Shown piece by piece: positions 1-64,000 of a DNA stretch of 64,000 nt (its first letter is position 1; each line of letters starts with the position of its first letter). The notes below the pieces were generated by a model, which worked only from the letters and a program-made list of their open reading frames with translations, was not told the origin of the DNA and did not search any database. A program made the translations under genes and the position numbers. This stretch comes from Carpediemonas membranifera BICM (taxonomy: Eukaryota > Protista > Fornicata): the NCBI GenBank assembly GCA_019828565.1, contig JAHDYR010000020.1, forward strand, positions 62,001-126,000, written 5' to 3'.

Positions 1-627
1 CGTTCGGGCGCATTTTGATGACTTTTGCCGACTTACGGCCTCTATGAATACCTAGCGCAGCTGAAATCGTTTTAGGGATGAGCACAATGAGAGCAGATGA
101 TTCAGCTCCAGCGCTTGCACATAAACTGCGAAGGAAGATCGCCCCAAATTGGCGGCTACAGCACAGAACTCGAACCTTCTATGCTGAGAGTCAGGACTAT
201 CTGGGCGTGTCTGAGTTTTCAGAAACTGCGAGGCCTCTTCCCGAATTTGCGAAGAACTTTTGCGTGCACTTTTGCGTGTCAAAAGTTGTGATGAAATCAT
301 TTCCTGTCATGCAGCCTTAGGTACCATGGCATCCCTCGCACGCTACTGGAACGAACAGCGGTGCTTTCTCTTTAAACTCTTCCAGGGAAGATTGAGCGCA
401 ATTTCGAAAAACATCATTTACTGTTGGCTGTATCACTGCTTAGAGGAAGTTGGCACCAGGGATTCGGGCCTGCTGTACCTTCAACACCCAGTTCTGGCTC
501 ACGGTGAGGCGGGTCACCATGAGGGCAGATGCAAACGCGAGACGGACATCGGCCCGCATTTCGATATGATTTTGATTCGGTCGACATCGACTGGACAATT
601 TTCGATTTTACTCGATTGTGTGTAAAG

Positions 628-1100
628 CCAGTACATGGCGAAAGGCAGGCGTTGTGGAGCTAGCCATCCGAGCCGCGGCGCCACTCGGCCGTTCGGCCCA
701 CACGACCTGGTCACCCACACAGGCCAGATCCAGATGGTCGGGTCAGGAAAACTCGTCAGGCTAACCCGATGATGCCCAACTTGGCAGCGGTCGGGCGAAA
801 CTGCGTCCATTCAGGATGTCGGGGATGAGAGAAAGAGGGGACCTGGGCAGGCTGCGCTTCGACTGTGGCTCCATTTGTTGGAGCAGGCATAGTCGAGGCC
901 GGACAGGCCTGGCGACGATTCGTGGTTCGCATGATGGCGTCATGAATCGCCTGGGCTGTGACTTCGAGTGACTCCGCCGGGGTGACTCCCTTGAGAAAAC
1001 TTATCACATTTTGATGATCTCGAGAACTGTTGAGTCTGCATTAAAGATATGAGCAGAAGGGATCTTTATGGCATGCACACAGTACCGTTCTGTTCTTACC
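628..1100. repeat. ~473-bp dispersed repeat, copy 1 (copy 2 at 6419-6891)
   Basis: Appears identical by eye from CCAGTACATGG to CTGTTCTTACC; the ORF track gives identical peptides in both copies. Confidence 0.95.
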
Positions 1101-1278
1101 TCTCGTGTCGACTCGACAAATTTCGAGACGCACCATCCGAGGTGTCATAGCCGGCACGTCTCCTGCGCCCATCTCCTCCAGATAGCGCCCATCCCGCACC
1201 AATGTTAGCAACTACTTGTTTGCACATTTTGCGCATGTTTAATCGTAGAAAAGCACAGACCCTGAAACTAGCACGCAG

Positions 1279-4200
1279 CTAAGGCAGGGCAATCCGACCA
1301 ACGGGCACGTCCTCGTCGTCCGACTCCTCGTCGCTCTCCTCTGAGTTGGGGACGGCGAGGTACACCAGCCACATGTCCATCAGCTCCTGCGACCCCAGCT
1401 CAATGAAGTCAACCGGGCCGTCGTTCGACTCGACTCTCAGGGTCATTGCCGGGTCAGTAACTGCGGCGGGCAGGGTCATGTCCGGCTGGCAGGGTCCAAC
1501 CGTGTGTATGGACATGGCGGGGATGGCGATGGTGTGCTCGGCGGTGGCGATCTCGAGCACGGCCGGGAATTTGGAGACCACGCAGGGCTTGAACGCGCCA
1601 TGCTCGAGCACACTGGCAGCCGACCGCACCTCGCCTCTCGGGCCGATGACGCTGACCCTGCCGACCGTCTGGTCCTTGCTACCGTCCTTCATCATCAGCT
1701 TATGGTCGTCAAAGGGAATCGTGGCCACTTGCTTCTTCTCCTCATCAATAAAATAATAAAACTGCACTGGTCCTGAAGCGTGTGGCCTGAAGCGGTCCAT
1801 TTTCAGTGGTGGGAGGGCGAGAGAGAAGGGAATATCCTCGTCCTCCTCCTCCTCGTGCTCCTCGCGCGACGCCGCGACCAATGAGCGTGGCGAGTCGAGC
1901 TCCTCCTCCTCGCGCTCCTCGCGCGACGCCGCGACCAATGAGCGTGGCGAGTCGAGCTCCTCCTCCTCGCGCGACGCCGCGACCAATGAGCGTGGCGAGT
2001 CGAGCTCCTCCTCCTCGTGCGACGCCGCGACCAATGAGCGTGGCGAGTCGAGCTCCTCCTCCCTCGTGCGACGCCGCGACCAATGAGCGTGGCGAGTCGA
2101 GCTCCTCCTCCTCGCGCGACGCCGCGACCAATGAGCGTGGCGAGTCGAGCTCCTCCTCCTCGCGCTCCTCGCGCGACGCCGCGACCAATGAGCGTGGCGA
2201 GTCGAGCTCCTCCTCCTCGTGCGACGCCGCGACCAATGAGCGTGGCGAGTCGAGCTCCTCCTCCTCGCGCGACGCCGCGACCAATGAGCGTGGCGAGTCG
2301 AGCTCCTCCTCCTCGTGCGACGCCGCGACCAATGAGCGTGGCGAGTCGAGCTCCTCCTCCTCGCGCGACGCCGCGACCAATGAGCGTGGCGAGTCGAGCT
2401 CCTCCTCCTCGTGCGACGCCGCGACCAATGAGCGTGGCGAGTCGAGCTCCTCCTCCTCGCGCGACGCCGCGACCAATGAGCGTGGCGAGTCGAGCTCCTC
2501 CTCCTCGCGCGACGCCGCGACCAATGAGCGTGGCGAGTCGAGCTCCTCCTCCTCGCGCGACGCCGCGACCAATGAGCGTGGCGAGTCGAGCTCCTCCTCC
2601 TCGCGCGACGCCGCGACCAATGAGCGTGGCGAGTCGAGCTCCTCCTCCTCGCGCGACGCCGCGACCAATGAGCGTGGCGAGTCGAGCTCCTCCTCCTCGC
2701 GCGACGCCGCGACCAATGAGCGTGGCGAGTCGAGCTCCTCCTCGCGCTCCTCGCGCGACGCCGCGACCAATGAGCGTGGCGAGTCGAGCTCCTCCTCCTC
2801 GCGCGACGCCGCGACCAATGAGCGTGGCGAGTCGAGCTCCTCCTCCTCGTGCGACGCCGCGACCAATGAGCGTGGCGAGTCGAGCTCCTCCTCCTCGCGC
2901 TCCTCGCGCGACGCTGCGACCAATGAGCGTGGCGAGTCGAGCTCCTCCTCCTCGCGCGACGCCGCGACCAATGAGCGTGGCGAGTCGAGCTCCTCCTCCT
3001 CGCGCGACGCCGCGACCAATGAGCGTGGCGAGTCGAGCTCCTCCTCCTCGTGCTCCTCGCACGACTCCGCGTCAATATCGAGGGGTGTGGCGACTGGCGT
3101 TGCCTCTTCCACCGGGGCCGGGCCATCAGAGATGGTGCCGAGGTCCCGGTCACGCCCGGCCTCTGGCTGCATCGGACTGGCCAGGACCTGCAGGGGCGGG
3201 GAGTCGTGGGGCTCGACGACTGACTCCCCCAACCCGCGGCTGGACGGCGACTGGATCATCGACCAAATCGCACCGCTGATCTCCACCTCCGTCTCTGACT
3301 CGGGGTCGTCGTCCATTGACAGCGGGGTCGCCTTCATGTCGAACTGTGGGGAGAGCACGGAGAAGCTGGAGACGGGGAAGCCGCCAGGCCGGGCTGAGCG
3401 ATTGTGTGTGGGTGGGAGTCTCAGAGGGGTGTGGGCCGGCTCAGCGGTCACTCGCTCGGGCGGGGGACCAAAGGCACGCGTACTAGGCGCCGGGCTGGGG
3501 CTCGGGCGGGTCTCGGGGACGGTCTGGGGCTCCATGTTGTGGGGACTGGGCATGCTGGGCGTATGGGCTATCGCCTGGGGCGACGTCCCCCCATTGCTCG
3601 GGGGTGCGGGGCCCTGCAGCACCGGGGGCGGGCTGAACACAGTCGCGGCGCCCCTCGGCTGCTTGGGTGTGAGCTCGATGTACTCATCGCCGGTCATCTC
3701 GTCGATGTAGCGGCCTCCGTCGGCAATAGCGTCGGCGAATTTGATCATCTGGGGACCAGGCGGGCATCTTCCAGGAAGATATGGAGAAGATACGGTGATT
3801 GGGCCCATAGATACGAATCCAAGATCCATTCTGACAATCTCAGGGTCGTGAATGAGTCGGAGCAGGTCGTTCCAGCTGTTGGCGTCGACGAGCAGCCCGT
3901 GGTCCCGATGGAAGAGGGAGACGCCGAGGGCCCTTATCCGGCCCTGCTCGGCACAGGCCTTGAGGAGCTCCGACAGCCCAGGCCCACTAATCGGGTTGCC
4001 CAGCACGTCTACCTCGAGCAAGCTCTCGTTCTCCCTTACAGCTGCGGCTAGTATCAGACCGGCGTCCGCGTCGAGTGCGTTTCCGTGGTCTGCACTGAAG
4101 CTGAACGACTGGTTCATTCCATGGACCACGACAGACCTCCGCTCATCGACTGTCGCGGTCAGCGCCTGGGCCAGCTTGCCGCAGGGGCCCTCGTGAAGAA

Positions 4201-4754
4201 CCCTGGGGTGACCGGCGGGCGAGCCCGTGGTCCTGAGGCTGAGCACCTCCAGAGACTTGGTGGACGCTATGTAGTCTGCTATCGCCTGCGCTGACCCTGT
4301 GGTGAGCCTGTTGTCGCCGATGTACAGCCGCTCGAGGGGCACGTCTGACATGGCCAGGGATTCGCATAAAAGCGTCGCCCCCTCGTCTCCGAGGAGGTTA
4401 TTCGATAGATGGAGCTCTCTGAGACGCGTGAATGCGATACGGACGAGGTTCATGAGGCTAAGAACTCCTTCTGCTGATAGCCGATTACCGTCGTATTCAA
4501 TACTGCGGAGGTTGATTAAAGAGGGAAGAGCGGCCGGCGCTCGCCAAATTGACTTGTACATGATCGAAAGAAGTTCATCTCCGTCTGTGTAAGTTCAAGC
4601 TGATGGACAAACTTTGTGATGGTAGGAATACTGCGCGAAGGGATTGCTCCTCGTCGCTTCTTTCTATATGATCGAGTACACTAATAATAGAATGCTCTAA
4701 TGCACAGTTTGCTGCATTACATTCCTGAATGAATACGTCTGTTAGCTTGCGCAT
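1279..4754 (-). CDS. RNI-like leucine-rich repeat protein with Pro-rich linker and acidic tandem-repeat region; intron 4585-4612; apparent frameshift at ~2061
   Basis: LRR motifs (LRELHLSNNLLGDEG, LERLYIGDNRLT). Upstream exon MRKLTDVF... joins in frame through a 28-nt GTTTGT..ACAG intron. An extra C in one repeat unit moves the frame to the ORF ending at 1279. Confidence 0.75.
1840..3065 (-). repeat. Coding minisatellite, ~25 copies of a 48-bp unit (EEEELDSPRSLVAAS[R/H])
   Basis: Direct tandem units with only R/H variation and occasional EER insertions. Confidence 0.95.
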
Positions 4755-4994: not shown

Positions 4995-6233
4995 CTACGC
5001 CTGGTTCGTCGGGATCCCGGCGTCGATGAGGCGGTAAAGGGGCTGGAGGGGACTCAGCAGCTGCCGGTCCTGTTGGTACACCTTAAGCAGGGCCCGGCAC
5101 ACCTTGCTGGTCTGCTCCGAGGTCAGGAACCACGCCAGGGCCGTGAGGGCGACGTACAGGTCGTCCGCCAGTGTCTGGATCTCTTGGGTCGACAGAAAGT
5201 GCGTCTTAGTGTCCCGGAAGTCGCCCCGGATCTTGGCAAAGCGGGCAGCCATGTGCCGGGCGACCTCGCGTGTGTCGGTGACACCCACACCGGCGAGCCT
5301 GACGACAGTGTCCTTGGCCGCGCGCTTGAGCACTGCGTTGACACCGAGGCCATCGGGCCCGACGCAGATCACACGAACGACCTCGGCCTGGAGCAGGGGT
5401 GGGAGTTCAGACACGCCCTCTGCGACAGCCGCCGCGAGCTGCTTGGCGTCGTAGTCGGCCCGGACGTCAGCGGGGGCGGCCGCCAGCAGGGTCTCAAGGG
5501 ACTCTGCGGCTCTACGGGCCACCATAGCGCACGTGGGGTCGACTCCGGCGGTGCGGATGACCGGGTCAGCGGCGAGGGCGAGGGCCTTGACGACGACGTC
5601 GAGGCCAGTCTCCGCAACATCGGCGAAGGCGACAGCGGGGCGGTCTATCCTGAACAAGTGGGCGGCCATACCAACGAAGAGTACGGGCGGCAGGACCGAC
5701 TCCGCTGCCCAGCCGAGGCCGGGGCGGACCGGGCTGGACGAGATGGCCCCGAGCAGCTCAAGCATGGCTCCGTAGTCGGGGCACAGGGGCATCGAGCTCT
5801 CACGCTCCTGGATGGCCTTCTTGGCGCGCATGCTGGCGACGAAGAGCTTCCCTCTGGCCATCGGGGGGATGGTGCCAAAGGCATCCTTGCTAGCCCAGCA
5901 ATCATCGGCCAGTGAGCCTAGAAGGATCTCGGCTACGCCCTTGACGGTGCTATCCATCGCGTTGAGGCGGGTTTGAAGATGGCTTGCTGCCATGAGAACA
6001 AAGGAGTCCGAAGCTTCGAGGATCGAGGGCACAGCAGTCTTAATATCGATAGAAGTAACGTTGGACTGGCAAATACCTTCATCGTTCTGAGAAAGGATCG
6101 GGGAATCAATCGGGTTGGGCAGGACACTATAGTGTGACATTGTATCGAGCAGCTGAACAGAGAGTGGTACATCATCGGATGGATCCTCCTTCTTCCGCTT
6201 TTGAGGCTTTGTAGATTCGGCCTTTCTAACCAT
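4995..6233 (-). CDS. Hypothetical alpha-helical protein
   Basis: Long ORF with host-like codon usage; first ATG at 6233. Confidence 0.65.
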   Translation of the reverse strand: MVRKAESTKPQKRKKEDPSDDVPLSVQLLDTMSHYSVLPNPIDSPILSQNDEGICQSNVTSIDIKTAVPSILEASDSFVLMAASHLQTRLNAMDSTVKGVAEILLGSLADDCWASKDAFGTIPPMARGKLFVASMRAKKAIQERESSMPLCPDYGAMLELLGAISSSPVRPGLGWAAESVLPPVLFVGMAAHLFRIDRPAVAFADVAETGLDVVVKALALAADPVIRTAGVDPTCAMVARRAAESLETLLAAAPADVRADYDAKQLAAAVAEGVSELPPLLQAEVVRVICVGPDGLGVNAVLKRAAKDTVVRLAGVGVTDTREVARHMAARFAKIRGDFRDTKTHFLSTQEIQTLADDLYVALTALAWFLTSEQTSKVCRALLKVYQQDRQLLSPLQPLYRLIDAGIPTNQA

Positions 6234-7070: not shown

Positions 7071-7763
7071 TTACTCGTCGTCTGAGTTCTGCTCATTGTC
7101 ATGCTCGTGGTCGGAGCCAGAGTCGGAGCCAGAGTCGGAGGAAGAAGAAGAGGAAGAAGAGGAGGAAGAGTCTTCCTCCTCCTGGGGGACATCTACAGGC
7201 TCCATCTCAAGCTCCTCGGCAGCCTGTGCATCAAGTGCATCGAGGTCGAGCTCGGCACCGTCATCAACACCATGCTGGCGCCTCGTACGGCGCACGGACC
7301 GCTTTGGACTAAACTCTGATATCTGTTCGACGCGCTGCTCATTGATCTCGAAGTCACGCTCGAGGGCCACGCGGGAGATTGAAGGCTTCTTGGACTGGAG
7401 GCGCTGGAGGAGCTTGGCATTCTCCACTGTGATCTTCTCCAACTCCCTCACACGATAGGAGCGGTTCAGGCTATCGGCAGGGCCTCTTGCAGGGGCCGAC
7501 ATGTCTACACCACCGCGAGAAGCCATGATGTGGGACATCTTGCCCAGAAGAATGTTGTTCTCGCGCTGGATCTCATAGTAGCGTTCTTCTTGAAGTTGCT
7601 GCTTCTTCTTGTTGTTCTTAAAATGGTTGAATTGTTTCGGAGCGCTGTTATCAATTGAAGGCTTGATGCCTGCAAGTTTCTTGCGGTGAAGCTCGAAGGC
7701 ACGATCATCCCATTTCTTTGAGCATATCTTGCTTGCAACGGGGATTGCTCGGAAGGCACACAT
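7071..7763 (-). CDS. CFAP97/Hemingway (KIAA1430)-family cilia protein
   Basis: HRKKL..IKPSIDN..P, EIQRENNILLGKM, SLN...R..E..KI..EN..LL.RL...KP motifs; acidic tail. Confidence 0.75.
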   Translation of the reverse strand: MCAFRAIPVASKICSKKWDDRAFELHRKKLAGIKPSIDNSAPKQFNHFKNNKKKQQLQEERYYEIQRENNILLGKMSHIMASRGGVDMSAPARGPADSLNRSYRVRELEKITVENAKLLQRLQSKKPSISRVALERDFEINEQRVEQISEFSPKRSVRRTRRQHGVDDGAELDLDALDAQAAEELEMEPVDVPQEEEDSSSSSSSSSSSDSGSDSGSDHEHDNEQNSDDE

Positions 7764-8074: not shown

Positions 8075-8516
8075 TTACTCCTGGACAATGTCGAGGATAT
8101 CGGAGTCACCCTGGTCGAGAATGGCCATGGTGCCGATGCGGAAGTAGCGGCCGCAGGCGGTGCCGAGGTCGGTGTTGGTGCCAGTGTAGTGCTCAACGGG
8201 GACGCGAGCGAGCATGCCGTAGTACTCGAGCTCAGACTTGCGGAGAGCGGGGCAGTTGGCAGCGACGATAACGAGCTTAGCCTCACCTGCGCGCATGGCC
8301 TTAAGGGTCTGCTTGTAGCCAAGGGCGAACTTGCCGCTCTTGGTAACGAGCTGGAGGCGGGAGTTGATGGACTCAAGGGTCTTCTTGGTGGACTATGTTA
8401 GATGATGACGCGATGCACCAAAACTGGCAAGGACTTCCCGCAAATTGGGGTATTAGAGGGATTCCCAACACGGATTACTCCTCAATTTTGATGTTTCATT
8501 AACGTACAGTGGACAT
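8075..8516 (-). CDS. RPL30: 60S ribosomal protein eL30; intron 8393-8507
   Basis: Spliced MST|[34 protein letters not shown]...[10 protein letters not shown]; GTACGT donor, CTAAC-ATAG acceptor. Confidence 0.95.
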
Positions 8517-9367: not shown

Positions 9368-12300
9368 CTACAGCGCATCCTCACCCAGGTAATCCGCGTT
9401 CTGAACACCGCGAAGGAGACCAAACTCCTCGTCGGCCCGGTCAACCACTGATGCCATCGAGCGGCCCGTGCTGGATGGGATGCCCTTGCCGATTACAACG
9501 CCATAGAGGACGCCGCCAGCAGCAACGACTGCACCGCCAATGAGCCCTACGCAGGCGATGAGCAAGCCGAGTACGAGGGCAGTCACGGCGAGGGCGACCT
9601 CAATACCACTCCCGGAGAAGGAGCTTCCACTGCCGCCCGTGGACGTGGGTACCGCCTTGACAGCGAACGTACCGCCACCCATGAGAGTCTGGAGGCCGTT
9701 GAACGTCGCAGAGTAGGTGTACTGGCCGGGTAGGAAGGCGACGGAGACACAGTAGTCGCCAGTCGCGGGGACGAGGTTGGGGTTGAGCACAAGGCTGTTG
9801 CCGGTGTCCTGGTTGAAAAAGAAGAAGTCAAACGCGAGCGGAGGGGCGCTGGTGATCTTACGGACAGCCTGAATGTCATATGCGTTGGCACAGAACGTCA
9901 CGGGGACGTCAGCGGTGAGAACGGACTCCTGGTCGACCATGATGATGGCGCTCTTGGTCGAGTCTGCCCGCATCTGGACAAACTTCTCGCGGCCGATGAT
10001 CTGGCCCTTGTACTTGGCCTGAATCTGCCCAGAGACGGGGAAGTTGGTCTGGACAGCAACGCAGTAGCGCTCGTGGTCCTCGTCGTAGATGAAGGTGGGG
10101 GCGTGACCCATAAAGAAGAGCTCCTGGGTCTGCTCGGAGGAGACAGTAGTGGGGTAAACTGCGACAAACTGGGTGTTGGCGACGAGGTCGGCGTTCTTCA
10201 TGGGGAGGAACCGGTTGTAGTCGTCACGAGGGCCGATGCATGCGTTCATCTGGCCGCCGTAGTGGACATAGGGGGATTCCATCTTGAGGGAGAACGTGGA
10301 GAGCGTCTCATCAAGGGCAAGAGGAGTGCCAATGTCGCCCTGGTACATGGTCACGCCGTCAATAGTCAGCGTGCACTGGGAGTAGTAGGAGTACAGCATC
10401 CTGGTCTTGCCGCCGATGATTTGCATGGCAGACAGCCTGAGGTCCCAGGCGGACCCCGCGCCCACGTCCATGGCGTTGAGTGTGATCTGGTGCGACACCA
10501 GCCCCATGCAGTCCATGGAGACCTGAGACATTAGGGGGTTGATGACGCCGTGGGTCAGGTCGAGGGCCACGTTCCATGCTGCGCCGTCGAAGGAGAGGTC
10601 GATGGAGCGGACCTTGGGCTTGATGGTGACGCAGGCGGGGATTGCGAAACGGAATGATTTCTCGCGAGCCTCGTTGCGGATAGTGAATTGGAGAATCTCG
10701 TCAGTAACAGGATAGTGCGAATCGGACCAGATCCAGAAGATATCGTCAACCATATCTACTGTAGCAGAGTGCACAGAAGAGTACGTCGCGCCGTACTGCT
10801 CGACCGCCCCAAGGATAGACTTGCCGACCGTGCCAGAGAGCGAAGCCACTCTGACCATGCCGTCGGGGTAAATCTCGTAAAAGGCCTGATCGTGCATGTC
10901 CGTCGACTCCATAGCAATGGTGTGCTCCTGGCCGGCATACACTCGGCTAAAGGGGCGGGACTGGGTGGCCGTGCCCGAGAGGGCTGGGACCATGGTGGGG
11001 GTGACCGTGGACTTGGCGCCCTCACCCTGGGCGAGCTGGCCGGAACCGTTGTCGCCCCAGGTGTAGACTGATGCGGTGTCGCCGGTGACTAGGGCCACGA
11101 CGTGAACGTAGCCAGTAGAGATGGCGGCGGTGTTGGGTGGGACGAGGGTAGACTTGGCGAAGGCCTTGATGTACTTGCCAGTGACGACGGCGGGATCGGT
11201 GCCTGTGTACTTGACGTTGCCGACGCCGTAGACCTGGAGCCCGTCATCAGAGAGGGCGAGGGTGAAGTCCTTACCGGCCGCCACGTGGATGGCAGAGCCG
11301 CTGACACCGCTGACGTAGGTGGGGGTGCCCTGGTACTGGGCGTCGGAGTTGATGCCGAGCTGGCCGACAGAGTTGTCACCCCAGGCGGCAACCTTGCCTG
11401 CAGAGTTGATGGCAAACATGTTGTCACCGCGGGCCTGGCCGAGAGCGTAGGGGATAAAGCCAGCGGGGAGGTTGACGGGCTTGAACTGGGAGCGGGAGAC
11501 AGTGGTGCCGTCACCGAGCTGGCCGAGGGAGTTGTCACCGCAAGCATAGAGCGTGCCGTCGGCAAGGAGGATGTACGATGCTCTGGATGTGGCCTCGATG
11601 TCTACAACGTCGAGGTCGTTGAACTGGGTGAGTTCGGTGAGCTTGTACTTGTTCGGAGTCGTGCAGTTTGTGGCAAGGCCAGTGCCGGCGACGTACACAT
11701 ATGTGCGGAGGGTGATGCTGTCGTAGGCCTTGAACAGGGCGTGGTTATCACCGACAGTGACGCCGTCGAAGAGGATGTTGGCGTTGCCGTTGGGAGCAAA
11801 CACCTGAAGCCAGACATCAGTGGTGGCCAGCGTCCGGCCGGGGTACTTGCTGCCGCCCAGCGTCCAGAGCTCGCCCTCGTTGGTGATCACAAACGTGCTG
11901 TCGCCGACTTCCACGTAGTCGACAGTGTGGTACTCGAACGGGGCGGTGCTCCAGTGGTTCGAGGGGGAATCGTAAGTCTTCTCGCCAGTGTTGGTGTCAA
12001 TCTGGCCGGCAGAGTTGTCGCCGGCGACGTAGACGATGTTGGTGTTGGCGTCAAAGGTGACCGTGCCGTGGGTCATGGAAAGAAGCGTGTCCATGGCGAT
12101 GGAATACGAACCAGTGGTGAAGGTAAACTTCCAGTTGCAGTCGTAGTACGCGTAAACGGGATTGGCGGGGTCGGGAACGGTGAAAGTGGCGTGGTAGATG
12201 TAGATCTCACGGACGTTCGTGCCAATGTGGGTGTAGCCGACGTTCGTGGAAGTGCCAAAGGTCGTAGTAACCGTTGTAACGGGGTTTGTCGTGGGCAAAT

Positions 12301-15623: not shown

Positions 15624-15626
15624 TTG

Positions 15627-43175: not shown

Positions 43176-43184
43176 TTTAATCGA

Positions 43185-48037: not shown

Positions 48038-48080
48038 CCCACAGTCTACCAGATACACTGAATCCACATAAATTCGCCAA

Positions 48081-51109: not shown

Positions 51110-51997
51110 TCACACCACCGGGATGGACGACGACGGCGGCGACAGGTTCATGTACGGGCTGCATGCCAGGGCAGACCCGCCGAAGGACTCGAGCTGGTCT
51201 AGGATGTCCCGGTGCCGGGGCGCCTTCGACCCGATGTTCAGCAGGTGCGACCGGCACATGGACTCGAGCGCGATGGCGGGGTTGTCCGCGGACTCAAGGT
51301 CAGCCCCCGAGCAGGCCACGAGCTGCCGTGCGTCCAGCCAGAGCAGTCGGGACGCCTTGGCCGACTCGACCTTGGAGGGCGACACGACCCTGTAGCCCTG
51401 GCCAGTGACGTCTGACACGATGGGGTCCACGGTGTGCGGGGCGAATGACACTGGGTGCCGCAGCCGCACGCCGAGGATGGTCGCCAGGGTCTGCAGTAGG
51501 ATGCACAGGAGGGCAGTGGAGTGGGCTGGCCTGGCCGGGGAGTACTCCTCGTTGTTGATGAAGACCTTGGGCGGCCGCTGTTCCATGATCTTGACCGACA
51601 GCATCGTCGTCAGCAGTGCATTCGTCGCCTGGCACTGCTCAGTGCACACCGTGCGGAAGAGGTCCTGAAGCTCGCCGCGGCTGGAACGGGACGCGGACGG
51701 CGTCTGTACGGGGGAACACTCGAGCAGGGTAAGGCGCCGGCCGACTAAGCTGGATGCTGCGTCGATCTCTTCGCACAGGTCATCAATGGAGAAACGCATC
51801 TCATCAGTCTTTCTCCTTGCATACTCGATTCGCTCCCTTAACTTTGTTTCCCGGGCTAAACTAGCTCGACCATGCTTGATCTCTCGAAGCCGGGAACCCA
51901 ACGAAGTCATTGCCTTGTCATTGGAGTCTAATGTATGTTTGTGCTGTGTTCGAAGAGTCTTCAGGATACTCTGGCGCAAACAGATGACCTGGCTCAT
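51110..51997 (-). CDS. Atg14/UVRAG (Vps38)-like coiled-coil protein
   Basis: Coiled coil followed by STAL...L..LA.ILGV.LRHPV.F and ..LL..D..QL...G, a BARA2-like pattern. Confidence 0.55.
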   Translation of the reverse strand: MSQVICLRQSILKTLRTQHKHTLDSNDKAMTSLGSRLREIKHGRASLARETKLRERIEYARRKTDEMRFSIDDLCEEIDAASSLVGRRLTLLECSPVQTPSASRSSRGELQDLFRTVCTEQCQATNALLTTMLSVKIMEQRPPKVFINNEEYSPARPAHSTALLCILLQTLATILGVRLRHPVSFAPHTVDPIVSDVTGQGYRVVSPSKVESAKASRLLWLDARQLVACSGADLESADNPAIALESMCRSHLLNIGSKAPRHRDILDQLESFGGSALACSPYMNLSPPSSSIPVV

Positions 51998-52615: not shown

Positions 52616-53512
52616 TTACCAGGCCAGTACGCTGCCGAACAATAAATGCTGAACGACCACAAACTTATCGAGTACCTCGCCGCGCCACATCTTCATCATT
52701 CCTTCGCAGATCTTTTTCCAGGTCTTGACGGCGCTGACGTCATACAGTATCGGGGCACACTCTGCGAGGTATGCGGACTTTGACTCCGTGATATACTTGA
52801 CAGCATCAAAATACATGTAATCCTCCGCGTTGGCGAGGATGCTGGACCGCTCACGGATGTCCTCTGGTACAACCAGCGGGTTGTCTATCAGCTGGCTAGC
52901 ACCAATGATGAACGGGGCGTGCTGGAAGTCGTCTAGGCCCCAGACGCCGTGTGACCCGGCGGGCTCCATCGTGTACTGTGTCTGCAGACGCCGTACGAGT
53001 GTGAGGTAGGCGTTGAACACCGTGATGGCGATCACATCGCCCTGCACTGGGGTGAGGAAGCCGATTTCCATGAGGATGAAGAGCCACGTGATGAATGAAA
53101 GCTCATGGCCGGTGCCATAGTCGATACGCGATGGCTGGCCCATGCTCTGCATGAAGTACGGGACGAGCTCGATAATGGCGCCGTGCTTGTGCTCTGGGAG
53201 CATCTGTTTGTGCACATCAACGATGACGGTCTCCAGGTACTCGTAAAACTCAACAAACGCCCCGTTACCGAAGCGGAGACGTTTCTCGTGCGGGGGGAAG
53301 TCGTCTATAATGTGATAGACGTCGTCTATCATGTCTAAAAGCTTCTGCGTGTTCTCATTTGGCTTTCCCACGCTGCTGTTCGGCATTCCCTGCACAGATT
53401 GCATTAGAAGCTCCATGAAGCCACAGAGCTTCTTGTATCCTGTAGAGCGCTTGAAATGGCTCATATCATTGGCGCTATGTATCTTCTTTTCAGGCTCTGA
53501 GTAATTGGACAT
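52616..53512 (-). CDS. PTPA: PP2A activator PTPA (Rrd1/2)
   Basis: RFGN.AF, RIDYGTGHELSF, EPAGSHGVWGLDDFQH.PFI.G, EVL.KF.VVQH..FG. Confidence 0.95.
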   Translation of the reverse strand: MSNYSEPEKKIHSANDMSHFKRSTGYKKLCGFMELLMQSVQGMPNSSVGKPNENTQKLLDMIDDVYHIIDDFPPHEKRLRFGNGAFVEFYEYLETVIVDVHKQMLPEHKHGAIIELVPYFMQSMGQPSRIDYGTGHELSFITWLFILMEIGFLTPVQGDVIAITVFNAYLTLVRRLQTQYTMEPAGSHGVWGLDDFQHAPFIIGASQLIDNPLVVPEDIRERSSILANAEDYMYFDAVKYITESKSAYLAECAPILYDVSAVKTWKKICEGMMKMWRGEVLDKFVVVQHLLFGSVLAW

Positions 53513-53897
53513 GGTTCGGATCCATTTACGAGTTAAAGTGAATGAATGTATATCATTTGGAGGAGCCTTGAGGCTCGGAGTGGATGGGATAACGTTCCAT
53601 CTTGGGTGGCCAGGCTACCACGGAAAAGATTAGTCAAGACTTGACTCACCAAGGAACGTGGTTCCGGCAAATCTTCAACACCGCCCATATCGACTCTTGT
53701 GGGAGACCATTCGGCGACAATATTCCGGCAACGAAGAACAAGCATGTTAGCATGAAGATGTTGACTAAGTGGCGAACTGACTCGAATGCCAGGAGGACTG
53801 TAATATCTACTCAAGTCAAAACAGCGTTTCTTGGCCGGATGAGTGAGGATACTACAGTATCGGTACCACAACACACCTGTAAGGTCATTTAGAGCGT

Positions 53898-54487
53898 TTA
53901 GAGCACAAGGCCGTCAAACTTGGTCTTGAAGTACTCCATAGCCTCCTCGCGGCCGACACGGTGAGAGCAGCCGATCTTGGCGTTGGCACGCTTGCGCTGG
54001 CAGACACGGTTGCCGGGGCGGGTGAGCTGGACGTAGAAGTCAGCACCGAAGATACCGGTAGCGGGGTCGTACTTGATGCCCATATCGATGTGCTCAGTGA
54101 TGCCGAAGCCGAAGCAGCCGTTGTTGTTGAAGTTCTTAGCGGAGAGCTCGAAATCCTTGCAACGGAGGCCACGCTCGATGATCTCAGCGGCCTTCTCGCC
54201 ACGGACAGTGACGTGAGTAGAGATCTTCTCGTTACGGCGGATGGAGAAGCCACGGATGGTCAGACGGGAGCGGGAGAAAACGGGCTTCTGGCCAGTGAGC
54301 TGCTCAAGAACCTTAGCAGCGCGGGTAAGGCGATCACCACTGCGTAAACTCTCTTAAAGGGCGCTTGAATCAGCAAATCCTAAACCACGTCGGGGTACAA
54401 CGTGCTGATCGAATCCAAGCGCCATGAAACGTACCTCTCACCAACACAGATGTTGAGAACAAGCTTTTCGATGCGGATGTCGTTCAT
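53898..54487 (-). CDS. RPL11: 60S ribosomal protein uL5 (L11); intron 54340-54434
   Basis: [13 protein letters not shown]|[14 protein letters not shown]...GIKYDP..GIFG.DFYV. Confidence 0.95.
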
Positions 54488-55057
54488 CTCGGGGTGTATG
54501 GCACAGCTGAAGCTCCTCGAGCAGTTTAAGTGGGAGGAGAAACCCATACACGTGAAAAATGGCTTAAACACGTCGAGACAAATTCTAGCCCCTGACACAG
54601 ATAAGACCTACCATGGCCACTTCTGTCAGCGATGGTAATCCGAGAAAATTCGTCAAGCTTATCAGCCATTATTTGGTGCAGTTTAGGAGTGAATGATTTG
54701 AAGATGTCTGGATGTAATAGCGGACAAGTTAGAGTGTAATATTCAATGGCTTACTGGATGTAGGATGGGGAGAACTATTTCGTGTTCGTTGTGCAACATT
54801 ACCAACCAATCCAGTCAACCCAACCCAGTGCATTCTTTCTAATCAGCAACATCAGCAAACTGTCTTAAGGGCCTATTAGCTTCGCCGTATCTCAGTATGG
54901 TCCACCATGGATCGACTTGCACGGGCACGCACAACACATAGGCTCCACATGGAAGAGAGAGAGTGCTGTCAACACGCTTTGACTTTTACCACACGATGGA
55001 TCAGGTTATCCGTGCCACATACGGCTCAGCTATGAGTCCCTGCCAGGCCTGGTACAG

Positions 55058-55555
55058 CTTACTGGAGGCCGTACTTCTTCGTCTTGGTGTAGTCTCTGCC
55101 CTGGGAGGCCTTGAGGAGCTTGAGGTTCTCTCTGTTGCGGGTACACTTAGCGATTGCCGCGCGCTCAACAATATTGTTCATGTTGGACTCGAACTTGCCC
55201 TTCATGGACTTGTTCTTGATGGCGGTATTGATACGCTTCATCTTCGCCTTTCCCGTGGTGGATTTGTTGAACTTCTTGCCATTTGCCTTGCTCGGGGCGA
55301 CTTTCTTCGCCTTCTTCACAGCTCCCTGTGCCATGCGCAACTCGTGGCAATCGTCAGACTTTTTTTACTCAACCCAAAACTGCCACTGCCGGAAAGGGGC
55401 GCGTGAGGGATGTCTCCCGCTGCGAGTGGGTGTCTCGCTGGTACAGTGGCCTCAGAAGTCCCGATGGATATTTGCCATGGCCACCACTAGCGCAGGCCGA
55501 CCCACATGGTGGGCGAGCACAAGAGTACGTAAACCGTTTACTTAGGCGACGATCT
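55058..55555. repeat. ~500-bp duplication, source copy (derived copy at 61591-62088)
   Basis: Near-identical; two substitutions near the right end. Confidence 0.95.
55059..55334 (-). CDS. Small basic UPF0390/DUF2462-like protein, copy 1
   Basis: MAQG start, Lys-rich, ..E.....A......LKLLKA. Confidence 0.7.
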   Translation of the reverse strand: MAQGAVKKAKKVAPSKANGKKFNKSTTGKAKMKRINTAIKNKSMKGKFESNMNNIVERAAIAKCTRNRENLKLLKASQGRDYTKTKKYGLQ

Positions 55556-55997
55556 GGTTGGCAGTGGCAGCCTCGTACTTGAAAGAGGGAGCAACCTTCT
55601 TGGTAGCACGGTAGTAGCGGGAAAGGCGGTGGATGCGGCTCTCGATAAGGATGAGTCTATACTTGCTGTCCTTATCACGGGGGTTACGCTCGATGTGCTT
55701 ACGGATAGAAACAGCGCGCTTGATCATCATGTAAAGGTCCTCGGGGATCTCGGGGGCAAGGCCCTGAGAGCGAAGCATACGGACGATCTTGTTGCCAGTG
55801 ACGGCGTGGATCTGGCCAACACCGTGCTGATCACGGAGAATGGTGCCAATGCGGGAAGGGTTCACGCCCTTGCGAGCCATACCAGCAATGATGGTGTTCA
55901 GCTCCTCGGTGGTCATCTTAGCCCACTCAGGAGCGGAGCGGTTGTAGGGAATGGCGGACTGCGCCACGCCCTTGCCGTTAGAATGCATTCTGCCCAT
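55542..55997 (-). CDS. RPS13: 40S ribosomal protein uS15 (S13)
   Basis: MGRMHS.GKG...SA.PY; PEDLY..IK.AV.IRKH; [21 protein letters not shown]. Confidence 0.97.
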
Positions 55998-56339
55998 CTT
56001 CTCGAACGCTCAAAGCAAAAGGACCAACTTTTTTCGCGTAAAAAAAAATGTGGCGAAAAAAGGAAGGGAGGTATGCTGTTCCACAGCAACTCATGCCGTC
56101 AGCTAGGTCTCGGCATTCCGTGTCTCCGGGTACAACATCTAGGCAAGAAAAGGGAGCATAGAAAAATCACCGGCCTGTCAGCCAGGGAATCCAAGGCAAT
56201 CCACAGCTTGACAAAAATACGCCACCAACACAACTTCTACGGAAGTACTGTTCCCCTTCGGCTAAGTTTCCTCAACTCAGCGCTTCACCACCCCGACAGT
56301 AATAAAAGTGAACAACAATGGCATGCAAGCAGAGCTCAT

Positions 56340-56547
56340 TTAAAGGGAGATAGCCTCCTCTAGAGGTAAGGGGTGGAAAGGGGTACATACCGGGGCAAGC
56401 CTCGATGCAGGCCTCGCACTCGACGCAAGCGTCGGCGTTGATGACGACAGCCTTATCGTCCTGCATCTCGAAAACCTCCTCGGGGCAGGTATCGACGCAA
56501 GCGCCGCAACCAACACACTTCTCAACATCAATAGTAGGGCCAGCCAT
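56340..56547 (-). CDS. 2[4Fe-4S] ferredoxin, 58 aa; intron 56360-56390
   Basis: Two CxxCxxCxxxCP motifs; splicing gives ...EACPEEAISL*. Confidence 0.92.
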
Positions 56548-57111
56548 TCTGAGTAAGAGAGCAAGGCAGGAGGCTTCAGCTGTCCGAAAAATCTCAAGTC
56601 ACATGCGCGCAAAACGCCGTAGACGATGTCAAATATGGCGTAAAACAACATGCGAGAAGGAGAGACGGATCCATCGGCCACAAGGCATACAAGAACAAGA
56701 ACTCTCAATTGAGGATGCAAGAAAAAACGTCAAAACTTTTCTTGCACCTCGCGGATCGAACGAGATTAACCCAAGTGTCTGCAAAATCGGGACTCGCCTT
56801 GAGTGATTCAGGTGAGATTGGCGTGTAATTATCTCATTTATGAAGTATTGACCCGGTAACTACCGTTGGGTCGGACGATATTCTTGATTGAATCAGCGAC
56901 GGCGTTTGCTAAGTTCTGGTGCTCGAATGTACCTGAAAGTAAATGTCGCTAGACCACCCAGGTATCCCATTACCAACAATTTTCTGCACCTTGAATGGCT
57001 GCACCCGCAGTGAAGTTGACACAATTCTCGACAGTCCAACTCAACTTTTCCAGATCCATTTTCTCGAATCAAATTATTCGCACAGTACCACACTCATCGG
57101 CACCCCAGCCT

Positions 57112-58350
57112 TTACTGCATGCCCAGGCCGACCTGCGTCTGGTCTACCTGACCTCCGAAGTCCTTGGCGCCAATGAATGCCAGCTCGGCCCGGATTAAGG
57201 CCTCAGCTGAGGCGGGGGAGTCCTCGCCATCAGCGTTCTTGACTGGGGCAAACTCGTGCTCGCGGGCAGCCAGGAAGACGCCGACTCGGTCAGCATAGGT
57301 GAGGCCGTCGAAGATGAACATCTCCAGCTTGTATCCATTGGGAGCGTCGGGGCGCACGGTCTTCCCGGTGGCCTCGTCGTAGTAAGGGATGGCCTTCTTC
57401 GCAACATGCCAAGGTAGGCGGCCGAGGGCGGCCCTTTTGATGAACTCAACGGTAAACATGTGATTCGCGATGTTGCCGCATGAGAAGAGCAGCTTGCCGT
57501 CGTCATCGGTGGCCTCGCGGAGGTCCTGGGGCAGCTCGGTATACTCCGCCACGACCGTCCGGGTCCCGTTGCGGCAGATGACACCGGTCTTCTCCTCGGG
57601 GGACCGCTTGGGAACGGCCTTCAGAGCTACGTCGTAGCGCTGGGTGACAAACTGGCCGACGAGTTCTGGGTCGCATATACGTGTGAGTGGGTTATCAACG
57701 GTAAATACGTGAATGTACCTCACCCCGCGCCGCTCAATGTCAAGCCAGGCTGTCGATGTACCAGGGCCGTTGGGCCCGTTGAACAGCGCGGAGTAGAGCC
57801 CGCCGTTGCCGTCAGCTGCGGTGACGAGGCTGTCGGGACCAGACTTGAGCGGCTGATAGTCGAGATCAAAGCATGGCACCTCGCCCTGAGTGAAGAAGAC
57901 CACCTGGGTCGGCTCCAGGCCAAAGAACGGCTGGTACTTCCCATGGGCCCCAGTCTCGAAGAACTCGCGCGTCTCGAGTATGTTGTCGGCACTGCACATG
58001 ACATAGAAGGGGACGGTGCCGCCCGAGAGCCGCTCCAGGGCAAGAATACGCATGGCCTGGATGACGAAGATGGGTGTCATGGTGCCCAAGACGCTGATGG
58101 GGAAGGTCCCCTTCGGGTGTGGGTACTTGAGGCGGGAGCCCATACCGCCGGCCATGACGAGGGCGGCTACACGGTCTTGCTTGAGCTCGTTGAGGCCTAC
58201 TTGGTAGATATTGTTGGAATCGGTGGCGTATTCGGGGGTGTAGGTGTCCTCTTTCGGGAAGGGAGTGAACGAGGCAATTTCGTTCGGAGCAACGCCTGAA
58301 AGAGCATTCTTCAGCTCGAAACGGAGCATATCCACGCTATTCAATGCCAT
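57112..58350 (-). CDS. UAP1: UDP-N-acetylglucosamine pyrophosphorylase
   Basis: MAGGMGSRL...PKG, DGNGGLY, VDN.L, VAEYTE, GNIANH, KLEMFIFD, EFAPVKNA. Confidence 0.93.
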   Translation of the reverse strand: MALNSVDMLRFELKNALSGVAPNEIASFTPFPKEDTYTPEYATDSNNIYQVGLNELKQDRVAALVMAGGMGSRLKYPHPKGTFPISVLGTMTPIFVIQAMRILALERLSGGTVPFYVMCSADNILETREFFETGAHGKYQPFFGLEPTQVVFFTQGEVPCFDLDYQPLKSGPDSLVTAADGNGGLYSALFNGPNGPGTSTAWLDIERRGVRYIHVFTVDNPLTRICDPELVGQFVTQRYDVALKAVPKRSPEEKTGVICRNGTRTVVAEYTELPQDLREATDDDGKLLFSCGNIANHMFTVEFIKRAALGRLPWHVAKKAIPYYDEATGKTVRPDAPNGYKLEMFIFDGLTYADRVGVFLAAREHEFAPVKNADGEDSPASAEALIRAELAFIGAKDFGGQVDQTQVGLGMQ

Positions 58351-58633: not shown

Positions 58634-59197
58634 TCATTCCTTGAATGTGGGGTTGCGGGTGTATTGGCGGCCGTTGACAACGCCGCCGAGTAGGGAGTCC
58701 CTCACAAGACGCTTGTATTGCTCAGGGTCCCTCTCAAGATCCGCACCGACCTCCTTGTTCAGCGGGTCGTACGACGTGGGTTCCTGCAGGATGAACTGGA
58801 GCCCGGCGATAAAAGCGCTCAGATCAAGAGCGGAGGAGTGATCCTCGCGCAGGATGTTGAGACAGACGTTGCCCTCCCAGTCTATGTTGGGGTGGTAGAG
58901 CGGGAGGGTCTTACAGTGCACCTTCGGGGGCTTGATCGGGTATGTGTCGGGAATCTCGAAGAGGAAGTCTATAGTGGCGGTAGCGTAGGGACCACGACGA
59001 ACAATGATCTTCACAATAAAGCTCGCAAGGTCATCAGAGCCGTCGGGCTTCTTGTTGAACTCGATCACATAATCATCGCTCTTAAGAAGGTTTGTGAAGT
59101 CTTGCTGGATGTGAAGAAGGGCGCTACGGCGAGATTCGCCAAATTGGGACCTGCCGGTCTCCTGTTCTTTCTTAGCAGCTGCACGGAGGCGGAGCAT
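58634..59197 (-). CDS. UBC12: NEDD8-conjugating E2
   Basis: YP..PPKV.C.T..YHPNID.EGNVCLNILRED; DPLNKE; basic N-terminal extension. Confidence 0.9.
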   Translation of the reverse strand: MLRLRAAAKKEQETGRSQFGESRRSALLHIQQDFTNLLKSDDYVIEFNKKPDGSDDLASFIVKIIVRRGPYATATIDFLFEIPDTYPIKPPKVHCKTLPLYHPNIDWEGNVCLNILREDHSSALDLSAFIAGLQFILQEPTSYDPLNKEVGADLERDPEQYKRLVRDSLLGGVVNGRQYTRNPTFKE

Positions 59198-59621: not shown

Positions 59622-60471
59622 TCAAGTCACCCGCTTCAGCCGGTTGACCCGCTTCCTCCTGAACAGCAGCGGCCTGTTCTGCATGATCGCCCCCATGCCA
59701 GGCCCCGTCGCGTCGTCCTCGTCCCCGAAGTCGAACACCACGCCATGCATCTCCCCATGGACCCTCTCCGCCGTCTTCCAGCTGAATCTAATACACGGCG
59801 GGAACCCGAAGACCCTGTCGTGGTACGTCCTCAGGAACGCCTTGGTCTTGGGGTCGCCCGGATAGCCGCTGCCGGTCACAACGGGGCCTGGGTCTGATGT
59901 GCTCATGCTCTCAGACGCCTTGGCGACCCAGTCGGGCCCGATGGCCTCGCCCTCGCACAGCTCCTCAACGGCCGAGTCTCGGGAAGTCTTGGCTGCAATA
60001 GAGGCTGCTGCGGTGACCGGGTATGTCCCGTCGGCCTTAGGCTCGACTGTGAGCTTGATGTGCTGAGGAATGCGCCGCCTGAGGAACTCGGCGTACCGAC
60101 CAGGGTCCCCGACAGTGTCGATGTAGGCGTGGGTCACGTGGTGGCCGAGGGATACTACGTGGTTGATCAGGGAGGCGGCGGCCTCGTGGGAGACGCTGTT
60201 GAGGTTGGCGGTTCGGGGGATGGCGAGCATCTTCTCGCTCAGGAACTCGGGAGTGAGATGCGTGACCTTGAAGCCAACGCCATGTGTTTCTTCAAGCTCG
60301 GAAAGCTTCTTGACGAGCTCACTGCGCTTGGCGTGGTCCAGTTGCTTCGAATCGTTCATGCCCACCTCGCGGAGATACTGATGGTGCTCTTCAGGGCTCC
60401 AGCAGATCCCGTAGACCATGGGGCCGATAACTGGACCTCTACCGGCCATAGTTCACACTGTCATCCGCCAT
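59622..60471 (-). CDS. RNASEH2A: Ribonuclease H2 subunit A with disrupted N-terminal catalytic motif
   Basis: AGRGPVIGPMVY, DSKQL, LN.VSH, YIDTVG, KAD..YP...AASI.AK..RD, GSGYPGDP.T, RFSW.T; the G-x-D-E before AGRG is missing. Confidence 0.85.
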
Positions 60472-60783: not shown

Positions 60784-61281
60784 TCAGAACTCTCGCAGCC
60801 TCAGACCGTAGTACAAGTGCGAGCACGTCTGCCCGTCGAAGTCAGCAACATCGGGCAGCATGCCCCACCTCTCGAACTGGTACTTCTCGAGCAGGGCAAC
60901 ACTGCCCTCGTTGGTGTTGAGGAGGATCGCCACAAGCTGCCTGTACCCAAGCTGCCTCGCCATGTTGATGGCGAATGCCAGGAGTTGACTGCCGTACCCT
61001 TGGCGCTGGAAGCTGTCGTGGACGTAGTAGCTAACCTCGGCAAGGTAGCGCATGGCCTTTCGTCCGGGCCGGTAAGCCGTCAAGTACACATATCCAACGC
61101 ACTGGCCCTCGTGTTCGAGCACATAGAGCGGATATGCGGAATCCCTGTGGGCATCGAGGAATCCTTGCCGCTGCTCAACTGTGAAGGGGTCCGTATCGGC
61201 AGTGCACCGTCTGGCAATGGCCTGGTTGTAGATCTCCGTCAAAGCGGAAATATCACGCTGTTCCGCCAAACGTAAACCCAT
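60784..61281 (-). CDS. GNAT acetyltransferase, phosphinothricin/YncA-like
   Basis: EIYNQAI...TAD..P, E.SYYV....Q.QGYGS.LL, N..S..L.EK..F..WG. Confidence 0.88.
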   Translation of the reverse strand: MGLRLAEQRDISALTEIYNQAIARRCTADTDPFTVEQRQGFLDAHRDSAYPLYVLEHEGQCVGYVYLTAYRPGRKAMRYLAEVSYYVHDSFQRQGYGSQLLAFAINMARQLGYRQLVAILLNTNEGSVALLEKYQFERWGMLPDVADFDGQTCSHLYYGLRLREF

Positions 61282-61591: not shown

Positions 61592-61867
61592 TTACTGGAG
61601 GCCGTACTTCTTCGTCTTGGTGTAGTCTCTGCCCTGGGAGGCCTTGAGGAGCTTGAGGTTCTCTCTGTTGCGGGTACACTTAGCGATTGCCGCGCGCTCA
61701 ACAATATTGTTCATGTTGGACTCGAACTTGCCCTTCATGGACTTGTTCTTGATGGCGGTATTGATACGCTTCATCTTCGCCTTTCCCGTGGTGGATTTGT
61801 TGAACTTCTTGCCATTTGCCTTGCTCGGGGCGACTTTCTTCGCCTTCTTCACAGCTCCCTGTGCCAT
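61592..61867 (-). CDS. Small basic UPF0390/DUF2462-like protein, copy 2 (within duplication 61591-62088)
   Basis: Protein identical to copy 1. Confidence 0.7.
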   Translation of the reverse strand: MAQGAVKKAKKVAPSKANGKKFNKSTTGKAKMKRINTAIKNKSMKGKFESNMNNIVERAAIAKCTRNRENLKLLKASQGRDYTKTKKYGLQ

Positions 61868-62882: not shown

Positions 62883-63509
62883 TCACCACGACCTGGGGGG
62901 CTCCGGGACAACCATGTTCCTCATCGGACTCCTGCTCTTGGGGTCGACCTTGAGGCCCTCTGTGACGTCCGTGTGGAAGCAGTGGCGGCAGACGGCGACG
63001 TACATGTCCGCACCGCCAATCACCTCGACGTCGGTGTCTGCCGTGATCCGTCTGGAGAAGGGCGCGTTCCTCCCGCAGATGTGGCAGACGGCGCTGAGCT
63101 TCGTGACATGCTCAGCCCGGGGAAGCAGGTCAATCACACGCGACGGGAAGGGGTCGCGGCGGAAGGTACCGTCCAGCGCGGCCACGATGACGTGTTTGCC
63201 GGCGTTGGCCATGTCGTCTGCGAACTGGACAATGTCGGGGAAGAACTGGCCCTCGTCGATGCCGATGACCTCGGCGTCAAGGGCTGCATCGAGGATTGAG
63301 AACAGATTGTCCGTCGGAATCGCCGGCAACTTGTGCCCTACATGCGTTGATACCTCATTGTTAGCTGTGTAGCGCGTATCCTTGGAGTATTTGATGACGA
63401 GGACCTTTCGTCCAGCTAGTTGCTGTCTGTCGCACAATCTAATCAGCTCTGTCGTCTTTCCACTGAACATTGGCCCGAATACGAGCGTTATTGACCCTCC
63501 GAAGTTCAT
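62883..63509 (-). CDS. TK1: Thymidine kinase (TK1 type)
   Basis: GPMFSGKTTEL, IGIDEGQFF, VIVAALDGTF.R.PF, KL.AVC..C, IGGAD.Y...CR.C. Confidence 0.95.
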   Translation of the reverse strand: MNFGGSITLVFGPMFSGKTTELIRLCDRQQLAGRKVLVIKYSKDTRYTANNEVSTHVGHKLPAIPTDNLFSILDAALDAEVIGIDEGQFFPDIVQFADDMANAGKHVIVAALDGTFRRDPFPSRVIDLLPRAEHVTKLSAVCHICGRNAPFSRRITADTDVEVIGGADMYVAVCRHCFHTDVTEGLKVDPKSRSPMRNMVVPEPPRSW

Positions 63510-63544
63510 GGATGGCGATTCCTTGTGATGGCGCAATTCGATCC

Positions 63545-64000
63545 TGTTGCGCAGTATAAACACATTTTTCGAACCTCCAAGACAGGGCCTGAAAGGAACG
63601 ATCAAAGTGCCAAACTGTACAATATCATCCGTCCGTAGACGAATGTTGGCGGTTAGCCAATTGATGATACTGGAATGAAGTTTGAAGACGTGGGATGTGC
63701 GACTGAACGGAGAGCCACTGAGCTCATCTTCCGTGGCAAGAGAACGCCACAGGATGTTCTCTGCAGCACTCTTGTCCCGATGATCAACATTCGGAGCATC
63801 AGGAATTGTTGCGCGCCACTGAGCACCACGGCACTGTCGATTTTCGCAGAGCATCACACGATGTGGGTGAACGTGCTGGTCATCACGCGGACGAACTCGC
63901 TTGTAGGTGGCGTGGCAGTGAGGGCAGACGACGGTGGTGCGATCCTCGTTAACCATGTTAAGATCGACGACAATGTTATACCCCTTGAGAAGGGAACTAT
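63545..64000 (-). mobile_element. Fanzor element family A: nuclease C-terminus (frame open to the window edge), candidate omegaRNA and terminus
   Basis: VNEDRTTVVCPHC (Glu plus first CxxC), CENRQC, RuvC-III HRDKSAAENIL; the 3' module is repeated at 15.8 and 38.1 kb. Confidence 0.85.

Follow-up and report, generated by a model that had tools for sequence, protein, structure and literature searches.

Why should dozens of functionally unrelated nuclear genes lie head to tail on a single DNA strand? The question is raised by a 64,000-nucleotide stretch of the Carpediemonas membranifera BICM genome (assembly GCA_019828565.1, contig JAHDYR010000020.1, positions 62001-126000), referred to here as the window. 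An earlier sequence-only reading had placed all host genes of the window on the minus strand and had proposed either polycistronic transcription or co-orientation with replication as the cause. We analyzed the whole of the contig (here C21, 231,768 bp), which belongs to an assembly of 24.24 Mb in 69 contigs, and find that the window forms the central part of an array, at least 200 kb long, in which more than 110 ordinary, unrelated nuclear genes stand head to tail.

With a GC content of about 57%, long spurious antisense open reading frames (ORFs) are expected in this DNA and raw ORF lists are ambiguous. Genes were called with a codon log-odds model trained on the long ORFs of C21, a score above 30 counting as a call. 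The model scores each ORF in its own orientation and therefore carries no bias toward either genome strand; the same model also calls Ty3 elements and one host gene on the plus strand elsewhere on C21. In the window, all 38 ORF calls with scores above 30 fell on the minus strand, as did U2AF1, RPL11 and a ferredoxin gene, which stand beside these 38. About 29 unrelated eukaryotic genes of the window have Pfam support, and these too are on the minus strand throughout; when RNA evidence is counted along with Pfam, about 30 genes are supported. By comparison, none of 15 of the longest plus-strand ORFs in the window had a Pfam match, and three of them lie across minus-strand mRNAs seen in the RNA data (see below); no supported plus-strand feature was found in the window. 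The one-strand layout reported earlier was thus borne out by both codon usage and protein families. The gap of 43 nucleotides (nt) reported behind the U2AF1 stop codon proved exact (TAA at 48083-48081, next ATG at 48037). The accompanying statement that transposable-element relics point the other way found no support in the window, where the sole mobile-element ORF identified is also on the minus strand.

The run extends to the contig end. From 32.1 kb to 231.8 kb, 112 of 115 calls with scores above 30 are on the minus strand; the other three come from two copies of the mobile-element ORF and from one inverted-duplicate gene encoding a TPH domain. This TPH-domain copy is the sole plus-strand host gene of the 200-kb run. 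The first 32 kb of C21 hold plus-strand Ty3/gypsy elements and an inverted array of a 185-amino-acid (aa) ORF, and the run is bounded by this transposon island on one side and by the end of the assembled sequence on the other. No divergent strand switch was found on C21, and telomere repeats were found at neither of its ends. Because the right end still appears to be coding on the minus strand, the run is at least 200 kb long. No tRNA genes, sought as an independent gauge of orientation from RNA polymerase III, were found in the 231.8 kb of C21, and no Rfam family reached its gathering score in the window. The two TPH-domain genes stand inverted, 1 kb apart (L014:7552-9027 on the plus strand and L015:56-1519 on the minus strand).

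If orientations were independent and 50:50, finding 38 of 38 genes on one strand would have a probability of about 7e-12. Orientation in the rest of the genome was sampled in two ways. The first sample covered 3.5 kb around each of 27 Ras-family genes from 20 other contigs; there, adjacent calls shared a strand in 49 of 60 pairs (0.82), or in 36 of 47 (0.77, p = 3.5e-4) when possible split genes were merged. The second sample consisted of the coordinates and strands of 294 matches to seven Pfam families, genome-wide. Here, the shared-strand fraction of same-contig pairs was 0.78 below 10 kb, 0.67-0.73 at 10-25 kb and about 0.5 beyond, a pattern that persists without C21 and without same-family pairs. 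Overall, co-orientation of neighbors amounts to 0.72-0.82. The strand bias does exist genome-wide, but it acts locally, in blocks that measure a few tens of kb. The sequence-only reading had named orientation elsewhere in the genome as the check on a general rule: neighbors elsewhere are not randomly oriented, but the bias is gone beyond about 25 kb, so a short-range tendency stood and a genome-wide rule of very long clusters did not. Under a neighbor bias of 0.8, a 38-gene window on one strand has a probability of about 3e-4. For the 112-gene run the corresponding value, with the bias taken as homogeneous, is about 1e-11, making C21 a strong outlier. In the nearest relative (GCA_002919055.1), the PTPA homolog (64% identical) lies on a 2.8-kb contig where its upstream neighbor is on the same strand and is not syntenic.

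Transcript evidence was taken from complementary DNA (cDNA) contigs of four small 2017 sequencing runs, aligned to positions 52001-58000 of the window. All four runs behave as cDNA, with poly(A) tails, spliced joints and more than 100-fold differences in depth. Poly(T) ends were found on the low-coordinate side of RPL11 (53880), a gene for a 91-aa basic protein (54974), RPS13 (55526/55530) and the ferredoxin gene (56330). Adapter-tagged 5' ends, reproducible between runs, lie at 53514, 54508/54514, 55357/55366 and 56021. The distance from 5' end to ATG is 2 nt for PTPA (measured on the mRNA of a paralog), 24 nt for RPS13, 23-32 nt for the 91-aa gene and 53-59 nt for RPL11. The introns at 54340-54434 and 56360-56390 are both GT..AG on the minus strand, and several spacers in the 6 kb had zero coverage in any run.

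A common non-genomic tag was observed at the 5' ends of the cDNA contigs, with the core 18-mer GACCTTGGCTGTCACTCA. This 18-mer is absent from the genome with up to two mismatches allowed, and just 2-5 extra A-rich letters stand between the adapter and the genomic sequence. The same 18-mer is named as an adapter trimmed from Roche 454 dRNA-seq libraries (PMC4176332) and is present in five unrelated papers. A spliced leader was considered as the identity of the shared tag and ruled out on two grounds: the genome does not contain the tag, and the tag is a known adapter of 454 libraries.

Sequence signals around the genes were analyzed together with the mapped ends. Each of the four mapped cleavage sites has a TAAA(Y) 10-16 nt upstream of it, mostly with G or A in front; this signal often overlaps the stop codon or directly follows it. 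TAAA occurs within 60 nt of the stop codon in 93 of 126 C21 genes (74%), compared with 33 of 126 in the antisense control; within coding sequence, it is ten times less frequent on the sense than on the antisense strand. Counts of TAAAY over whole bins were also tried as an indicator of strand but did not discriminate, as the signal is present in the spacers in sense orientation. Upstream of the ATGs, no pyrimidine tract, AG acceptor or universal motif was found and composition was flat, in agreement with the earlier remark that no uniform trans-splice acceptor precedes the genes. At 11 genes, or about a tenth of the ATGs, the motif ATAAACTGCAC (sense strand) precedes the ATG by 18-60 nt; these 11 are drawn from 20 minus-strand occurrences in the run, an example being 54522-54528 upstream of RPL11. 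ATAAACTGCAC is a candidate core promoter element. A-rich tracts were present at three start sites, and the shortest spacers measure 42-43 nt.

We consider it probable that these genes are separate transcription units in a genome with a short-range habit of co-orientation, of which the C21 array is the extreme tail. Each gene in the 6-kb stretch would form its own transcription unit, with an mRNA that starts just upstream of the ATG, appears to carry no spliced leader, and ends at its own poly(A) site 10-16 nt past a TAAA-type signal behind the stop codon. This type of ending was seen at four sites and probably applies to about three quarters of the genes. In a genome that is compact and has leaky termination, co-orientation would serve to avoid transcriptional interference, and this is the cause that we favor. 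Given spacers of a few hundred bases and an RNA polymerase II (Pol II) that would run past poly(A) sites, genes in tandem may ensure that read-through stays in sense orientation and that promoters and terminators do not clash, and with few inversions a long run could persist.

Several observations weigh against this explanation. The RNA view is limited to 6 kb of mostly very highly expressed genes and consists of assembled contigs from old, small libraries, which are blind to nascent RNA. The adapter-tagged 5' ends could in principle be processed ends. The cDNA contigs over PTPA are about 3% off the window copy and match a paralog on contig C39, and the ferredoxin contigs stop near 56703-56710 without an adapter. 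In one run (X1), contigs span the spacers 55300-55796, 54676-55086 and 53532-53931, at a bridging depth of roughly 0.5-7% of the upstream gene; this low-level read-through occurs downstream of very highly expressed genes, and we interpret it as the usual continuation of transcription beyond the poly(A) site. Genome-wide sampling was sparse (about 0.1 Mb of neighboring DNA and 294 domain matches), and when kinases are removed from the Pfam-family sample the shared-strand fraction falls to 0.62 below 25 kb (n=29). Furthermore, beyond the genome-wide habit some further factor acts on the C21 run.

Polycistrony of the kinetoplastid type, as proposed in the sequence-only reading, finds no support, in view of the own 5' ends and poly(A) sites of the genes tested, the lack of a shared leader and the per-gene poly(A) signals. 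A polycistronic primary transcript might also do without a spliced leader, with rare Pol II starts and mRNAs cut at each TAAA. The long unidirectional array, the cDNA contigs that span some spacers and spacers as short as 42-43 nt are in line with such transcription, as is the avoidance of TAAA in sense coding sequence, by which read-through would not be stopped in the downstream gene. We regard this as highly improbable, however, given the discrete and reproducible adapter-tagged 5' ends near ATGs, the more than 100-fold differences in depth between neighbors, the several uncovered spacers, and the presence of ATAAACTGCAC before a tenth of the ATGs, which suggests per-gene promoters. We also know of no route by which internal cleavage products are capped without a leader. 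The layout could instead be a product of history without selection, in which an old block was spared inversions and the local bias arose from tandem or sense-oriented duplication. Local same-strand duplicates (the SNARE and 91-aa genes), many single-gene copies of 90-96% identity dispersed in the genome, and the scarcity of mobile elements in the run are consistent with this history. Yet the genes of the run are unrelated, so that duplication cannot account for their common strand; the inverted duplicate within the run shows that inversions happen; and without a directional force orientation drifts to 50:50, whereas neighbors are about 77% co-oriented genome-wide. On this evidence, history alone is a very unlikely explanation.

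Replication was the other cause suggested for the one-strand layout, and the statement on which it drew, that Carpediemonas is reported to lack ORC and Cdc6, agrees with the genome paper, which states that both are absent and proposes recombination- or transcription-initiated replication (PMC8516963). Replication would then begin at few, perhaps transcription-linked sites, genes would be selected to lie along the fork, and each block would be a replicon arm. Besides the loss of ORC/Cdc6 and the proposal built on it, the block size of 20-40 kb fits this idea, being similar to the spacing of yeast origins. The orientation of the mobile element points the same way: its copies, compared by eye with the nearest host gene within 10 kb, were on the same strand in nine cases and on the opposite strand in nine, and in the absence of an orientation preference the strand bias belongs to expressed host genes and not to all insertions. 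Nevertheless, spacer cores show no strand skew (GC -0.010, AT -0.007, over 38.7 kb), unlike bacterial replichores, and one fork would need to travel 200 kb or more. Codon positions account for the bulk GC skew of the window, and we take the near-zero skew of the spacers as support for replication neither way. Co-orientation with replication is, in our judgment, unlikely. A broader proposal would divide the genome into directional blocks, typically 20-60 kb long and at their largest at least 200 kb, in which every gene is transcribed independently and which correspond to replicon arms; this appears quite unlikely. If it were true, forks in the absence of ORC/Cdc6 would set out from transcription-linked sites at divergent switches and terminate at transposon islands or convergent switches, selection on gene orientation would act against head-on conflicts, and gene order would be a readable map of an origin-recognition-free replication program.

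Returning to separate transcription units, the arrangement can be placed among known systems. Kinetoplastid clusters likewise hold tens to more than 100 unrelated genes head to tail over hundreds of kb, and in both cases one cluster end adjoins a retroelement-rich region. In contrast to them, the C21 genes appear to be without a spliced leader and each gene tested has its own poly(A) signal and 5' end, Carpediemonas introns are cis-spliced, and the Carpediemonas clusters are short genome-wide (the correlation is lost beyond about 25 kb) and not chromosome-long. Dinoflagellate unidirectional arrays and nematode and tunicate operons share co-oriented neighbors and short spacers with C21. Their transcripts are resolved by spliced-leader trans-splicing, whereas no spliced leader was seen on the Carpediemonas cDNA contigs examined. 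Monocistronic genes of the Giardia type resemble those of C21 in their short 5' and 3' untranslated regions and small spacers, although to our knowledge no runs of a hundred co-oriented genes have been described in Giardia. The G/A-preceded UAAA 10-16 nt before cleavage is also comparable to the Giardia poly(A) signal, WGURAA (PMC11529991); Carpediemonas is not among the species of this 2024 survey of protist poly(A) signals (PMC11529991). Bacterial leading-strand bias similarly produces a strong excess of genes on one strand across a long region, but the C21 spacers are without strand skew. The layout is therefore kinetoplastid-like, while in expression the genes resemble the compact monocistronic ones of other metamonads, here in tandem runs of unusual length.

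Long co-oriented runs of unrelated genes elsewhere, in trypanosomes and dinoflagellates, accompany polycistrony and spliced leaders. In Carpediemonas the same layout is found with separately started and separately polyadenylated mRNAs, and conventional mRNAs in such a layout imply that layout and expression mode can be uncoupled. The host is also the one free-living eukaryote reported to be without ORC and Cdc6, which makes its strand switches and the 200-kb run concrete places to look for fork direction and initiation. Gene orientation is not mentioned in the genome paper or its supplements (PMC8516963), and no published description of co-orientation in Carpediemonas was found in the literature searched. 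Coordinates of the features in the window are given in Table 1, for which the spliced genes (RPL11 and ferredoxin) were profile-searched exon by exon.

Table 1. Features of the 64-kb window of C21, in window coordinates, with the evidence for each.
Feature	Coordinates	Strand	Evidence
LRR protein gene (938 aa)	1745..4561	-	Pfam LRR_6; codon score 103
ORF of 412 aa, without family	4995..6233	-	codon score 118; no Pfam or NCBIfam match
CFAP97/Hemingway gene	7071..7763	-	Pfam 1.6e-25
RPL30 (L7Ae family), 3' exon	8075..8296	-	Pfam 7e-14
RCC1-repeat protein gene	9368..12490	-	Pfam RCC1; codon score 389
WD40 protein gene	12737..13741	-	Pfam
ZIP zinc transporter gene	14004..14954	-	Pfam 6e-42
C2H2 zinc-finger gene	15093..15623	-	Pfam
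Coiled-coil ORF, 460 aa	16368..17750	-	codon score 108; SMC-like matches weak only
Longin SNARE (VAMP7-like), copy 1	17993..18691	-	Pfam Synaptobrevin and Longin
NPC1/Patched-like sterol-sensing membrane protein gene	18927..21995	-	Pfam; codon score 415
HMG-CoA synthase gene	22251..23711	-	Pfam
Longin SNARE, copy 2	23954..24652	-	99.6% identical to copy 1 (blastp)
Two paralogous small ORFs (144 and 134 aa)	25808..27084	-	codon scores 45 and 46; mutual identity 44%
Clathrin adaptor sigma subunit gene	27385..27852	-	Pfam 7e-54
Thioredoxin-reductase-like flavoprotein gene	28943..29893	-	Pfam Pyr_redox_2
ORF of 160 aa, without family	30244..30726	-	codon score 39
Proteasome subunit, 3' exon	31765..32124	-	Pfam 6e-28
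Tim44-like domain protein gene	32891..33817	-	Pfam
Rab/Ras GTPase gene	33999..34580	-	Pfam 3e-44
ORF of 223 aa	35686..36357	-	codon score 32; weak Ku_C match, below cut-off
RING and RRM (NOT4-like) gene	36556..38019	-	Pfam
Two ORFs (378 and 260 aa), without family	38569..40663	-	codon scores 55 and 60
Ssu72 CTD phosphatase gene	40973..41656	-	Pfam 7e-29
ORF of 239 aa, without family	41878..42597	-	codon score 67
Mobile element	43242..45047	-	ORF 43242-44663 and high-copy 1.05-kb segment 44001-45047
TPR-repeat protein gene (labeled CTR9 in the sequence-only reading)	45551..48037	-	Pfam TPR; probable ATG 48037
Spacer of 43 nt, U2AF1 stop to next ATG	48038..48080	-	sequence
U2AF1 (CCCH-RRM-CCCH, RD-rich tail)	48081..49142	-	Pfam
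ORF of 295 aa, without family	51110..51997	-	codon score 48; 90% identical copy on C63
PTPA gene	52616..53514	-	Pfam 1.6e-102; 5' end 53514 from cDNA of ~3%-divergent paralog
RPL11 (uL5) mRNA	53880..54514	-	poly(A) 53880, 5' ends 54508/54514, intron 54340-54434; Pfam on exon 2
91-aa basic protein mRNA	54974..55366	-	poly(A) 54974, 5' ends 55357/55366; weak DUF2462 match
RPS13 mRNA	55526..56021	-	poly(A) 55526/55530, 5' end 56021; Pfam
2[4Fe-4S] ferredoxin mRNA	56330..56710	-	poly(A) 56330, intron 56360-56390 (31 nt); Pfam Fer4 on exon 1
UDP-sugar pyrophosphorylase gene	57112..58350	-	Pfam UDPGP
Ubiquitin-conjugating enzyme gene	58634..59197	-	Pfam
RNase HII/H2A gene	59622..60449	-	Pfam
GNAT acetyltransferase gene	60784..61281	-	Pfam
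91-aa protein gene, second copy	61592..61867	-	100% identical to 55059-55334 copy (blastp)
Thymidine kinase gene, N-terminal extension	62883..63956	-	Pfam TK 1e-59

At the TPR-repeat gene, a longer ORF begins at 48646; its first 203 codons (48037-48646) read the repetitive RD-rich tail of U2AF1 in another frame, and automated annotation could mistakenly stretch the TPR gene across U2AF1. The mobile-element ORF of the window had no match in a PDB sequence search or in NCBIfam. Two further copies of this ORF (62-97% identity) are present on C21, both on the plus strand and outside the window, and the 1.05-kb segment at 44001-45047 has at least 35 copies in the genome (93-100% identity), distributed over both strands. 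Adjoining the Ty3/gypsy island at the beginning of C21, the array of the 185-aa ORF (L001:2650-9145) consists of five copies of 98-100% identity, three on the minus and two on the plus strand; the ORF has no Pfam match.

The run contains two same-strand local duplicates, the longin SNARE pair (99.6% identical) and the pair of 91-aa basic protein genes (100%). Copies of 90-96% identity to window segments 52544-53514, 45549-49172, 51053-51999, 59621-60585 and 62876-63994 lie elsewhere in the genome, on contigs C39, C14, C63, C7 and C1, and comprise single genes and one gene pair. For PTPA, the end of the homology coincides exactly with the 5' end mapped by RNA (53514), a hint that the duplication was RNA-mediated. 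Identical scores were obtained for many domain matches on separate contigs, such as C6:586103 and C21:33182, or C8:974352 and C14:55645; this suggests either widespread recent dispersed duplication or partly unmerged haplotypes.

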